64,000 bases of DNA from Macrostomum lignano (GCA_002269645.1 NIVC01000467.1:62001-126000), one strand, 5' to 3'; positions 34,032-38,248 are shown, counted from the stretch's first letter. The notes: generated by a model not told the origin, from the letters alone. Numbers and translations are program-made.

Positions 34032-37000
34032 ATGAGTCATTACACCAGAGCCAGAAGCCCTCAGAAGTTGAGCTTCCAGTACCTGGATTACTATGTGAAA
34101 CGATTTGTTGGCGAGAAAACTGGCTTAGGAGTTCGAGTCGACCTGCAAACTAACTGGGTGGCCATCAAATCCTTGGAAGCCAATGGCTCAGTAGCTTTGG
34201 CCATGTTCTGGATCAAGGTACTGCAGCATAAAGATAATTATCCCACAGACAGAGTGCACTATCACCGCGGCCGGGATAGCGAGACGGGCGCCGATCGGCT
34301 GCAAATCCGTGTCGATGACGTCACCTTTTGTTTAAATTTATCTACCGGCCTACTAGAAATTTCTGGTCCGCACGTGCTGCAATGGATTAAAAAACGATTT
34401 CTGAAGTTGTTGAGAGCCTACGACGGGTTCAAGGACACCGCGGACTGGTACGGCGATGAGTTGGCGGACGAAGATAGAATAGATCTGAGTCTGCCGCTGC
34501 GCGCATCATCGGGTGACCGATATGGAGACGACAGGCAGATCGCTGGCGGGGTTCTTGATGGTCTGGTAAGCATTTCAGTCCTGGCAGTAACAGTTTATTG
34601 ATAGTTAAGTTAGCTAGTTTGTTTCGTAGTTAGTTAGTTAGTCAGTTAGTTAGTTAGTTAGTTTGTTTGTTTGTTTGTTTGTTTGTTAGTTTGTTAGTTA
34701 GATAGTGAGTTAGTTAGTTAGTTAGTTAGTTAGTTAGTAAGTTTGTTTGTTTGTTTGTTAGTTAGTTAGTTAGTTAGTCAGTCAGTCGGTTAGTTAGTTA
34801 GTTTGTTAGTTAGTTAGTTAGTTAGTGAGTTAGTTAGTTAGTTAGTTAGTTAGTTAGTTAGTTAGTTTGTTTGTTTGTTAGTTAGTTAGTTAGTTAGTCA
34901 GTCAGTTAGTTTGTTTGTTTGTTAGTTAGTTAGTTAGTCAGTCAGTCAGTTAGTTAGTTAGTTTGTTAGTTAGTTAGTTAGTCAGTCAGTCAGTTAGTTA
35001 GTTTGTTTGTTTGTTAGTTAGTTAGTTAGTTAGTTAGTTAGTTAGTTAGTTAGTTAGTTAGTTAGTTAGTTTGTTTGTTTGTTTGTTTGTTTGTTTGTTT
35101 GTTTGTTAGTTAGTTAGTTAGTTAGTAAGTTAGTTAGTTAGTTAGTTAGTTAGTTAGTTAGTTTGTTTGTTTGTTTGTTTGTTAGTTAGTTAGTTAGTTA
35201 GTCAGTCAGTCAGTTAGTTAGTTATTTTGTTAGTTAGTTAGTTAGTTAGTTAGTTAGTTTGTTTGTTAGTTAGTTAGTTAGTTAGTTAGTTAGTTAGTTA
35301 GATAGATAGTTAGTCAGTTAGTGAGTTAGTTAGTTAATTAGTTAGTTAGTTAGTTAGTTAGTTAGTTAGTCAGTCAGTCAGTTAGTTAGTTTGTTTGTTT
35401 GTTAGTTAGTTAGTTAGTTAGTTAGTTAGTTAGTTAGTTAGTTAGTTAGTTAGTTAGTTAGTTAGTTAGTTAGTGAGTTAGTTAGTTAGTTAGTTAGTTA
35501 GTTAGTTAGTTAGTTAGTTAGTTAGTTAGTTTGTTTGTTTGTTTGTTAGTTAGTTAGTTAGTTAGTTAGTTAGTTAGTTAGTTAGTGAGTTAGTTAGTTA
35601 GTTAGTTAGTTAGTTAGTTTGTTTGTTTGTTTGTTTGTTTGTTAGTTAGTTAGTCAGTCAGTCAGTTAGTTAGTTTGTTTGTTTGTTAGTTAGTTAGTTA
35701 GTTTGTTTGTTTGTTTGTTAGTTAGTTAGTTAGTTAGTTAGTTAGTTAGATAGTTAGTTAGTTAGTTAGTGAGTTAGTTAGTTAATTAGTTAGTTAGTTA
35801 GTTAGATAGTTAGTTAGTTAGTTAGTTTGTTTGTTTGTTTGTTTGTTAGTTAGTTAGTTAGTTAGTTAGTTAGTTAGTTTGTTTGTTTGTTAGTTAGTTA
35901 GTTAGTTAGTTAGTTAGTTTGTTTGTTAGTTAGTTAGTTAGTTAGTTAGTTAGTTAGTTTGTTTGTTTGTTTGTTTGTTTGTTAGTTAGTTAGTTAGTCA
36001 GTCAGTCAGTTAGTTTGTTTGTTTGTTAGTTAGTTAGTTAGTTAGTTTGTTTGTTTGTTAGTTAGTTAGTTAGTTAGTTAGTTAGTTAGTTAGATAGATA
36101 GTTAGTTAGTTAGTGAGTTAGTTAGTTAATTAGTTAGTTAGTTAGTTAGATAGTTAGTTAGTTAGTTTGTTTGTTTGTTTGTTTGTTTGTTTGTTAGTTA
36201 GTTAGTTAGTTAGTTAGTTAGTTTGTTTGTTTGTTAGTTAGTTAGTTAGTTAGTTTGTTTGTTTGTTTGTTTGTTAGTTAGTTAGTTAGTTAGTTAGTTA
36301 GTTAGTTTGTTTGTTTGTTTGTTAGTTAGTTAGTTAGTTAGTTAGTTTGTTAGTTAGTTAGTTAGTTAGTTAGTCAGTTAGTTAGTTAGTTTGTTTGTTA
36401 GTTAGTTAGTTAGTTAGTTAGTTTGTTTGTTTGTTAGTTAGTTAGTTAGTTAGTTAGTTAGTTAGATAGTTAGTTAGTTAGTTAGTTAGTTAGTTAGTTA
36501 GTTTGTTTGTTTGTTTGTTAGTTAGTTAGTTAGTCAGTCAGTCAGTTAGTTAGTTAGTTAGTTTGTTAGTTAAATAGTTAGTTAGTTAGTTAGTTAGTTA
36601 GTGAGTTAGTTAGTTAGTTAGTTAGTTAGTTAGTTAGTTAGTTAGTTAGTTTGTTTGTTTGTTTGTTTGTTAGTTAGTTAGTGAGTTAGTTAGTTAGTTA
36701 GTTAGTTAGTTAGTTAGTTAGTTTGTTTGTTTGTTTGTTAGTTAGTTAGTTAGTTAGTTAGTCAGTCAGTCAGTTAGTTAGTTTGTTAGTTAGTTAGTTA
36801 GTTAGTTAGTTTGTTTGTTTGTTTGTTAGTTAGTTAGTTAGTTAGTTAGTTAGTTAGATAGTTAGTTAGTTAGTTAGTGAGTTAGTTAGTTAATTAGTTA
36901 GTTAGTTAGTTAGATAGTTAGTTAGTTAGTTAGTTTGTTTGTTTGTTTGTTTGTTAGTTAGTTAGTTAGTTAGTTAGTTAGTTAGTTTGTTTGTTTGTTT

Positions 37001-38248
37001 GTTAGTTAGTTAGTTAGTTAGTTTGTTTGTTTGTTTGTTTGTTTGTTAGTTAGTTAGTTAGTTAGTTAGTTAGTTAGTTAGTTTGTTTGTTTGTTTGTTT
37101 GTTTGTTTGTTAGTTAGTTAGTTAGTTAGTTAGTTAGTTAGTTAGTTAGTCAGTCAGTTAGTTAGTTTGTTTGTTTGTTTGTTAGTTAGTTAGTTAGTTA
37201 GTTAGTTAGTTAGTTAGTTAGTTAGTTAGTTAGTTAGTTAGTTAGTTAGTTAGTTTGTTTGTTAGATAGTTAGTTAGTTAGTTAGTTAGTTAGTTAGTTT
37301 GTTTGTTTGTTTGTTTGTTAGTTAGTTAGTTAGTTAGTTAGTTAGTTTGTTTGTTTGTTTGTTAGTTAGTTAGTTAGTTAGTTAGTTAGTTAGTTAGTTA
37401 GTTAGTTAGTCAGTTAGTTAGTTAGTTAGTTAGTTAGTTAGTTAGTTAGTTAGTTAGTTAGTTAGTCAGTCAGTTAGTTAGTTAGTTAGTTAGTTAGTTA
37501 GTTAGTTAGTTAGTTAGTTAGTTAGTTAGTTAATTAGTTAGTTAGTTAGTTAGTTAGTTAGTTAGTTAGTTAGTTAGTTAGTTAGTTAGTTAGTTAGTTA
37601 GTTAGTTAGTTAGTTAGTTAGTTAGTTAGTTAGTTAGTTAGTTAGTTAGTTAGTTAGTCAGTTAGTTAGTAGAACATCTATCAATCACCCACCTTCCAGT
37701 GGCAAGGCCAGGCTCTGGACTCGCGAATCGAACGCGCGAAAATTCCTTCGGTGCAGCCAACAGCAGATTACGTTTGGCCGATGCTGAAGTCGCTGCTATT
37801 TCGCTGGCTATCCGATGAGCACACCCAGGTGTGTTTAATCACCTCTCAGATGGACTCAACTGCTCTACGGGAACTGTGCCAGTTAGCCTGCTCTTTGAAG
37901 TCTACCGCCAGCTTCTCAATGATCTGCGCTCCGTTTAAAGCCGACCCGGTGTCTGGCAAAGATCTGCCAAGCGTTCGAACTTCAGCGATGAAAGATTTTC
38001 CAGCTCAGGAGCAGATGTGGCTGGAGTACAAGCTGATGAAGCAGATCACATCGCCAATGGTTGCTAGCGGATTAAACCTCATCGCTGGCTTGCGGCTTGG
38101 TCAGGCTCAGGTGCTCCTGACATCGGCGCCTTTTCACAGCAGTTCTTCAACTTCGCAAGTTCGTCGAGCAGATTCTGTGCAGTTTCTGCAGCTCACCGAA
38201 AGCATATTTATGCACGATTTTGTGCAGCCGCTAAACAGATCGATGTAG
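34032..38248 (+). CDS. Uncharacterised 360-aa protein, 2 exons (34032-34565, 37700-38248); C-terminal half PLD/nuclease-fold-like but catalytically degenerate
   Basis: ATG at 34032, donor CTG|GTAAGC at 34566, and acceptor CCTTCCAG|TGG at 37699/37700. The phase-0 join links two supplied non-repetitive ORFs. The product call is pattern-level only (VCLITSQMD...LIAG..GQAQVLLTSAPFH). Confidence 0.7.
34602..37670. repeat. 3-kb compound (TTAG/TTTG/TCAG)n microsatellite filling the intron of the uncharacterised gene
   Basis: Directly visible. Confidence 0.97.

Follow-up and report, generated by a model that had tools for sequence, protein, structure and literature searches.

What kind of protein remains when a fold typical of nucleases is maintained and the residues responsible for cleavage have been replaced? 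This question is raised by a gene at positions 34032-38248 (plus strand) in a stretch of 64,000 nucleotides (nt) from the flatworm Macrostomum lignano (GCA_002269645.1, NIVC01000467.1:62001-126000), referred to below as the window, whose numbering is used for all coordinates unless stated otherwise. An initial annotation of the window described this locus, Mlig004046, as an orphan two-domain gene. On balance, we consider that it is a two-exon gene representing an undescribed protein family built on a phospholipase D (PLD)-type scaffold, and that the M. lignano member of this family is a conserved pseudo-enzyme.

Gene structure and selective constraint

Exon 1 of the gene (34032-34565, plus strand; 534 nt, 178 codons, amino acids (aa) 1-178) starts with an ATG at 34032, has a frame open to 34565, and encodes the N-terminal domain and an acidic linker. 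Exon 2 (37700-38248, plus strand; 549 nt, 182 codons plus stop, aa 179-360) ends with a TAG at 38248. They are separated by a phase 0 GT..AG intron of 3134 bp (34566-37699, plus strand), with the donor G/GTAAGC (intron from 34566) and an acceptor, ...caccttccag, ending at 37699; between 34602 and 37670 this intron is a period-4 array, (TTAG)n, present in 767 copies on the plus strand. Joined in phase 0, the two open reading frames (ORFs) give a protein of 360 aa. The initial annotation had proposed exactly this structure, and the peptides that it quoted, i.e. VCLITSQMD (aa 222-230), SGLNLIAGLRLGQAQVLLTSAPFH (aa 301-324) and VTFCLNLSTGLLEISG (aa 97-112), are all correct, as are its coordinates. 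A low-confidence candidate poly(A) signal, AATAAA (38427-38432, plus strand), lies approximately 180 nt past the stop codon, and the same string occurs in a second genomic copy of the gene, L001.

The gene has already been deposited in GenBank, as an unnamed hypothetical protein. Entry PAA82482.1 (Mlig004046.g3, Macrostomum lignano 'hypothetical protein') is identical to the predicted product over aa 4-360, PAA76932.1 (Mlig004046.g5) shows 99% identity to the 360-aa protein, and a third, partial copy is represented by g2. Models g3 and g5 cross exactly the predicted exon junction. The Mlig_3_7 annotation was made from RNA-seq data by genome-guided assemblers (PMC5730564), and since the GenBank models derive from this annotation, spliced transcripts of the gene are implied.

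Comparison with L001 (the g5 locus, contig NIVC01000778.1), which is syntenic with the stretch containing Mlig004046, permitted an estimate of selective constraint. The start codon, donor, acceptor, stop codon and both frames of L001 all match those of the gene at 34032-38248. Its intron (L001 positions 10526-11235) is composed of 710 bp of TTAG-type repeat, compared with 3134 bp in the window; this length gap reflects TTAG copy number alone, the unique intron ends being 97-100% identical. The coding sequences differ at 20 positions (15 synonymous and 5 non-synonymous), which corresponds to a ratio of non-synonymous to synonymous change (pN/pS) of 0.10 (binomial P = 1.5e-6 versus the neutral expectation). 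The two copies are 98.1% identical in exon 1 and 98.2% in exon 2; identity is lower outside the exons, at 95% on the 3' side and 86% on the 5' side. The predominance of synonymous substitutions and the better conservation of the exons than of the flanks therefore indicate purifying selection on the protein. The M. lignano entries for the family comprise three near-identical copies only (g2, g3 and g5), located in syntenic paralogous loci; the possibility that they are transposon genes was judged unlikely on the basis of this copy number and synteny. We regard it as almost certain that Mlig004046 is a real protein-coding gene under constraint.

The protein family and its predicted PLD-type domain

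The view that Mlig004046 is an orphan had to be abandoned. An exhaustive phmmer (HMMER) search of 1.84 billion cluster representatives, with a cut-off of E <= 1e-3, matched 68 other clusters, including 36 at E <= 1e-10, the best of them at E = 2e-41; a word-indexed homology search alone returned only the M. lignano cluster, and would have suggested an orphan. Approximately 12 of the matched clusters represent full-length two-domain proteins (363-400 aa), and many others span one half only. The latter come mostly from short contigs, on which gene callers would see single exons. All of the named members are spiralian, and each is described as 'uncharacterized' or 'hypothetical'. They originate from bivalves (Sinanodonta, Potamilus, Argopecten and Mercenaria), gastropods (Haliotis, Babylonia, Biomphalaria and Patella), the annelid Owenia, the nemertean Tubulanus and the brachiopod Lingula, and those of the molluscs are annotated by NCBI as ordinary single loci. 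At the above cut-off there was no named bacterial or viral homologue among the 1.84 billion representatives, in which unnamed Logan, ENA and JGI entries remain unplaced.

The closest relative (P0002) is encoded by one uninterrupted ORF of 369 aa on a 1249-nt Logan contig, which is most simply interpreted as a transcript. Two NCBI-annotated bivalve proteins, P0044 (Mercenaria, 201 aa) and P0066 (Argopecten, 231 aa), consist of the C-terminal domain only and have an intact H-K-N motif, in bivalves that possess two-domain members too; the PLD-type domain therefore occurs alone as well. A search of the accessible literature library found no mention of Mlig004046, the mollusc LOC identifiers, the UniProt ids, SRR21676451, or DUF3378 together with phospholipase D. 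Moreover, Mlig004046 is absent from the supplements of the M. lignano expression papers examined, some files of which were perhaps incomplete. Neither the family nor its domain arrangement, nor the coexistence of live and dead motifs within it, seems to have been described before. As judged from sequence comparisons, the family is lineage-restricted, with all known named members in Spiralia, and is placed outside every curated PLD subfamily.

Structure prediction with AlphaFold2, using a 70-sequence family alignment, resulted in a model with a predicted local distance difference test score (pLDDT) of 86.9; the single-sequence model (pLDDT 37) was unusable. The former contains two well-defined domains, comprising aa 11-131 and aa 181-357. 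The latter region (37706-38236, plus strand) is the predicted PLD-superfamily domain, with one motif per chain; its block-mean pLDDT is 94-98 across most of its length, and the HKD-region motif forms a strand-turn-strand structure (aa 305-310 and 313-319). In Foldseek comparisons with the PDB, the top ranks were all occupied by the PLD superfamily (probability 0.98-1.0 for the top eight), with alignments of approximately 150-215 columns (approximately 170 for the best three). The matches included SauUSI (E 2.6e-4), NgoAVII (E 5.5e-4), the FAM83 structures 5qhm (E 1.5e-3) and 4urj_B (E 2.9e-3) at ranks 4 and 5, Zucchini (E 2.9e-3) and BfiI (E 1e-2), followed at lower ranks by PPK1, then Tdp1 and PLD3 (E 0.017-0.1 for PLD3/PLD4 and Tdp1). 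Among the predicted viral structures of BFVD, a NucT-like nuclease was the best match (E 9.7e-5), and the C1 domain of polyphosphate kinase (PPK), which is PLD-like, was also found. In the predicted model, the shape of the C-terminal domain is nearest to that of restriction-type single-HKD nucleases.

These predictions agree with the initial proposal that the C-terminal half adopts a PLD fold, since most residues of aa 181-357 exceed a pLDDT of 90 in the family-based model and Foldseek places it accordingly. A further indication came from a Pfam scan of the homologues, five of which matched PLDc_2 (best E 8.3e-5, 22.9 bits versus a gathering score of 27) and four the RE_NgoFVII PLD domain, in all cases below the threshold. 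These were the only recurrent Pfam families in the scan; the matches involve motif-intact homologues and, wherever coordinates were listed, cover the motif region. The placement of the family in the PLD superfamily is thus based on the combination of fold, motif and recurrent sub-threshold profile matches.

Several results weigh against this placement. The 360-aa protein itself had no match in a Pfam scan at E <= 10, and the gathering score was reached by no family member. When PDB sequences were searched with hmmsearch, neither a whole-family profile nor separate profiles of the N- and C-domains recovered a PLD, TBP or RNase HIII protein; weak matches to TnsA/TnsB and UBR in this search were dismissed as chance. 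The hhalign comparison of the C-domain alignment of the family (A4) with PDB-verified mouse, human and fly Zucchini/PLD6 was non-significant (probability 0.2%, E 0.35). The likeness in fold to Zucchini and Nuc that had been suggested initially was thus recovered at the level of fold only (Zucchini and the NucT-like nuclease in the Foldseek results). Finally, the placement of the fold depends on one predicted model. Taking all of this together, we consider it very probable that the C-terminal domain has a PLD fold whose canonical site has been lost.

The C-domain alignment defines the family consensus Y-P-x-x-x-F-H-A-K-F-I-A-G-V-K-D-G-x-A-E-V-L-V-T-S-A-N-F-H-x-x-H-F, which, as read from sequence, is an HKD signature: H-x-K, then (G/T)-S-x-N on the next strand. 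It differs from the classical form in three respects: the hairpin leading from Lys to Ser-x-Asn is longer by three residues, the classical Asp position holds V, T or I, including in members whose motif is complete in all other respects, and T-S is present in place of G-S. The corresponding stretch of the M. lignano protein is S-G-L-N-L-I-A-G-L-R-L-G-Q-A-Q-V-L-L-T-S-A-P-F-H, and family alignments identify within it a degenerate HKD motif, G302-L-N304-L-I-A-G-L309...T-S-A-P322 (38069-38131, plus strand), in which G302, N304 and P322 occupy the His, Lys and Asn positions of the family. The initial description of an erased catalytic site is therefore accurate for these three residues, as alignment with intact homologues demonstrates, but not for Asp: this residue is unconserved throughout the family, so its absence is a family trait rather than a loss.

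A census of 41 C-domains found His in 12, Lys in 21, Asn in 17 and all three in 11. The motif H-x-K...T-S-x-N is present in bivalve, annelid (Owenia) and nemertean (Tubulanus) members, among them Argopecten XP_069118189, Owenia A0A8S4PHP1 and Tubulanus XP_074658121; lophotrochozoan proteins with an intact HxK..SAN, which the initial annotation had mentioned, do exist among the homologues. In a rough neighbour-joining tree of the C-domains, which is too crude for counting loss events, the intact H-K-N proteins (of bivalves, Owenia, Tubulanus and several unnamed sources) form a broad central group. The tree also contains a His-less gastropod clade (Q-K-D, S-S-N and others), a clade comprising M. 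lignano (G-N-P), P0002 (G-N-R) and P0014 (Y-N-D), and another His-less clade (P0046, P0054 and P0056), in addition to scattered single changes. On this sequence evidence it is likely that the motif was lost more than once within the family. Members of the M. lignano clade are approximately 31% identical to each other, and P0002 and P0014 also have neither the His nor the Lys; since such divergent proteins are still encoded by full-length ORFs, the dead state is old and maintained. Irrespective of motif status, D230, which the model places immediately beyond the first strand, where a helix begins, is invariant, and E287, T319 and several hydrophobic positions are conserved in at least 90% of the C-domains.

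The N-terminal domain and the possible function of the family

The N-terminal alpha/beta domain (34062-34424, plus strand; aa 11-131) is delimited by the AlphaFold2 model and by conservation, and has the order a-bb-a-bbbb-a. Model confidence is lower at its start (block-mean pLDDT 72, aa 11-20) than over aa 21-130 (92-98), and its elements (strands 34-38, 42-47, 78-81, 88-94, 97-102 and 108-111, helices 54-64 and 115-131) are compatible with a TBP-like order. The domain is well conserved, with invariant W, Y and G residues, and carries two motifs, G-S-x-x-L-x-x-x-W-x-x-V-L-Q-H-x-x-N-Y-P-x-x-x-Y and T-G-x-L-x-I-x-G-x-x-x-x-x-W-F. It is followed by a disordered acidic linker (34431-34541, plus strand; aa 134-170, pLDDT below 50); the isoelectric point (pI) of the linker region aa 132-180 is 4.05. 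The family as a whole follows this plan, with an N-terminal domain of approximately 120 aa, a disordered acidic linker and a C-terminal domain of approximately 175 aa.

According to the initial annotation, this domain resembles the TBP-like module of RNase HIII N-domains and some retroelement ORF1 proteins. RNase HIII genes were collected from 80 Bacillaceae genomes with an RNase HIII query (confirmed by hits of 52-94% identity), and 17 of their N-domains were aligned. When this alignment was compared with that of the family, hhalign paired DRLQIRVDDVTFCLNLSTGLLEISGPHV with AVFQAKPPGCTITAYQSGKVLFQGKNA of RNase HIII (probability 12%, P = 0.0025, 27 columns), i.e. the family hairpin V-t-i-t-V..TG-L-I-G with C-T-I-T-A-Y-S-G-K-V-L-F-Q-G. 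In a Pfam scan of 32 N-domains, just two families were matched by more than one domain: RnlA_toxin, with a best E of 0.02, and DUF3378, with a best E of 0.051, each by two of the domains. DUF3378 is the N-domain of RNase HIII, and both it and RnlA_toxin are TBP-like domains joined to RNases. TBP itself appeared in Foldseek comparisons with the PDB as weak matches (1ais_A, E 0.19, probability 0.41; together with 7egb_P and 4rod_B, E 0.19, 0.22 and 0.28, probability 0.25-0.41), and viral TBPs were found in BFVD at a weak E of 0.055-0.12. No ORF1 family occurred among the listed Pfam matches, and no comparison was aimed at ORF1 proteins; the low copy number in syntenic M. lignano loci, and the ordinary single loci of the molluscs, point indirectly away from a protein of this type.

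The hairpin that had been pointed to was thus aligned and TBP is present in the fold lists, but none of the scores is individually significant (E 0.19 for TBP in Foldseek, a probability of 12% in hhalign and E >= 0.02 in Pfam), and a profile search of PDB sequences with the N-domain found nothing. The N-domain of M. lignano is basic (pI 9.4), a further weak signal in the same direction, although the family median of 7.9 is no strong signature of nucleic-acid binding. Jointly, the weak sequence and model-based signals make a TBP-like reading of the domain plausible; whether it is truly related to the TBP-like domains of RNase HIII and RnlA is nearly an even question, on which we lean slightly towards the negative.

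The established mechanism of the PLD superfamily assigns nucleophilic attack to the His and phosphate binding to the Lys and Asn; in single-HKD nucleases (Nuc, Zucchini, BfiI) two chains contribute to each active site. We infer the function of the family from structural and evolutionary comparisons. Ancestral members would have acted like the single-HKD nucleases Nuc, Zucchini, BfiI and NgoAVII: two chains would associate, each contributing its His, Lys and Asn to a single shared phosphodiesterase site, with the nucleic acid held by the N-domain. Intact members probably act on nucleic acid, by analogy with the nearest structures and because of the RNase-associated look of the N-domain, although their substrate could instead be a lipid or another phosphodiester. 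In the M. lignano protein the nucleophile is absent and no phospho-histidine intermediate would be formed, and for this reason we view it as a pseudo-enzyme. Its scaffold would have been kept, probably for binding a ligand or a partner without cleavage: it may bind nucleic acid and leave it uncut, dock a partner in the manner of FAM83, or pair with another subunit. That the protein is a non-catalytic binder of nucleic acid or of a partner is a tentative suggestion, for which we claim somewhat less than even likelihood.

Other explanations of the locus have to be considered. The replaced catalytic residues, the labelling of the GenBank entries as partial and the intron composed of an unstable microsatellite (3.1 kb here as against 0.7 kb in L001) could all be expected of a decaying gene, i.e. 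a pseudogene in progress, or of an annotation artefact uniting two chance ORFs. This reading is very improbable, and we reject it, as it is contradicted by pN/pS and by homology: splice sites and frames are unbroken in both copies when compared as DNA, exon conservation is far above that of the flanks, a homologue is matched over its full length at E = 2e-41, and both domains reach a pLDDT above 90. The same strong purifying selection is compatible with a protein that is still an enzyme, acting through a non-canonical site built, for example, from His324, D230 or E287. The invariance of D230 and the conservation of E287 and T319 would fit such a site, and His324 (of P-F-H, two residues past the lost Asn) is a point against a pseudo-enzyme, since this F-H is common in intact and dead members alike. 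However, we know of no PLD-superfamily enzyme that works without the His, and D230, placed at a helix start in the model, looks structural; retained catalysis is, in our opinion, unlikely.

We assign a similarly low likelihood to a role as partner or regulator of an active PLD-type subunit, in a heterodimer whose composite site has one functional half. Single-HKD nucleases need two chains per site, families with live and dead paralogues often operate in this way, and molluscs do have several paralogues of differing motif status; Argopecten, for example, has two, and Mercenaria a protein consisting of the C-domain alone. This idea is weakened by the finding that no motif-intact member turned up in M. 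lignano, only g2, g3 and g5; moreover, its two nearest relatives are also dead. The last alternative concerns origin rather than activity: a restriction-type PLD nuclease of bacteria or phages might have been horizontally transferred into a spiralian ancestor, the flatworm gene being its disarmed, domesticated remnant. The closest structures are indeed those of bacterial restriction endonucleases (SauUSI, NgoAVII, BfiI) and of a phage NucT-like nuclease, the recurrent Pfam matches include the RE_NgoFVII PLD domain, and the weak matches of the N-domain are to bacterial RNase HIII and RnlA domains. Nevertheless, all named matches in the phmmer search are animal proteins, with none from bacteria or viruses, and a spliceosomal intron interrupts the gene, whose paralogous loci are syntenic with each other, which makes such a transfer improbable.

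The conserved pseudo-enzyme described above may be part of a wider picture. In its most extended form, which we offer as speculation and think more doubtful than probable, the family would constitute a Spiralia-only system for processing or sensing nucleic acids: a single-HKD nuclease guided by a TBP-like domain, with a role analogous to that of Zucchini or PLD3/4, would have turned independently into a non-cutting binder in gastropods, in the flatworm clade and in others, and the flatworm pseudo-nuclease would read or shield nucleic acid.

Genomic surroundings and comparison with known systems

Tandem arrays crowd the whole 64-kb window. Upstream of Mlig004046, plus-strand ORFs at 26091-26966, 27758-29164 and 30050-30346 encode spectrin repeats (E 6e-16 and 6e-40) in addition to a PH domain (E 5.5e-10); their sequence suggests that these are the 3' exons of a beta-spectrin-type gene that ends approximately 3.7 kb before exon 1. 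A 10-bp repeat, (GACACACAAG)n, at 29358-30020 creates long repetitive ORFs on both strands (His/Thr-rich on the plus strand, Cys/Val-rich on the minus strand), which are almost certainly not genes. The interval separating the spectrin-like gene from Mlig004046 contains a 34-bp satellite (30461-31945) of 44 copies with 96% matching, a short block of which occurs upstream of the gene in L001.

Approximately 260 bp past the stop codon there is a 20-bp minisatellite, GTACAAACTTTGAATGAGGT (38510-38799), which is far longer in L001 (about 12000-13300 in the numbering of that copy). Further downstream, approximately 3.4 kb past the stop, a (CTAA)n array at 41680-42417 (and 42683-42911), also present in L001, is the reverse complement of the intronic (TTAG)n; if ever contained in one transcript, the two arrays could pair over hundreds of bases. 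Two blocks, approximately 38800-41060 and 42140-44775, have no counterpart in the otherwise collinear L001, and may be insertions or remnants of mobile elements; ORFs within them (e.g. 43144-43578) had no Pfam match. The plus-strand ORF at 45336-46076, in a region conserved in L001, has a weak, sub-threshold match to a LAMP2-like luminal domain (E 6.8e-4) and enters a 33-bp coding repeat, (GSGGVLNGVLM)n. A 3.3-kb satellite (54823-58101), composed of 141 copies of the 23-bp unit AATAATGATTTCGAAGAGTGAAT, is the cause of a strong GC skew at 55-58 kb.

The PLD superfamily plays diverse roles in animals: Zucchini acts in piRNA biogenesis, PLD3/4 clear endosomal nucleic acids, and Tdp1 participates in DNA repair. 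The present analysis would add to it a further family, outside Pfam, that extends across molluscs, annelids, nemerteans, brachiopods and flatworms and has a new domain arrangement, in which a putative TBP-like domain precedes a single-HKD domain. The analysis also points to a natural experiment: roughly one in four of the C-domains sampled retains the catalytic triad, and the others have lost it, apparently more than once, and are still under constraint. As RNA interference and transgenesis are available in M. lignano, Mlig004046 offers a tractable case for determining what a nuclease scaffold does after cutting ends.

Among known systems, the single-HKD nucleases (Nuc of pKM101, NucT, Zucchini/PLD6, and the PLD domains of BfiI, NgoAVII, NgoFVII and SauUSI) share with the family one HKD-type motif per domain of approximately 170 aa, a similar predicted fold (Foldseek E 2.6e-4 to 1e-2) and the location of the motif on a strand-turn-strand hairpin. 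In contrast to these nucleases, the family has a hairpin extended by three residues, an unconserved Asp position and T-S-x-N instead of G-S-x-N; its sequence similarity to them is under every curated threshold, its named members are all from spiralian animals, and in M. lignano the His, Lys and Asn are all replaced. BfiI and NgoAVII also resemble the family in the fusion of a catalytic-type domain to a separate putative nucleic-acid-binding domain, although theirs is C-terminal and B3-like, whereas that of the family is N-terminal and, as predicted, TBP-like. Other animal PLD-fold proteins acting on nucleic acids, namely PLD3/PLD4 and Tdp1, were recovered in the fold search as weaker matches than the single-HKD nucleases (E 0.017-0.1); they have two HKD-type halves per chain, are much larger, and differ in localisation signals and catalytic details.

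With regard to the N-terminal half, RNase HIII (DUF3378) and RnlA/RNase LS likewise have a small alpha/beta domain ahead of a nuclease-type one. In the model, the elements of the spiralian domain follow a comparable order (a three-strand meander with a helix at the end), and the hairpin aligned by hhalign, x-T-I-T-x-x-x-[ST]-G-x-L-x-I-x-G, then W/F, would be common to both. The spiralian domain differs in its additional N-terminal helix and strands and in a strongly conserved motif (W..VLQH..NYP...Y) that those families lack, and its partner is a PLD-type rather than an RNase H or RnlA-type domain.

A parallel to the M. lignano protein, as regards the fate of the active site, is found in FAM83 (DUF1669), a known animal pseudo-PLD in which a PLD fold without a working HKD site is kept as a non-catalytic module and used for docking. 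No sequence relationship between the two was detected; DUF1669 is absent from the Pfam families listed for the 70 sequences (the first 25 of 32). FAM83 is also devoid of the TBP-like N-domain. Moreover, it is as a whole a family without an intact motif, whereas the spiralian family mixes intact and dead members.

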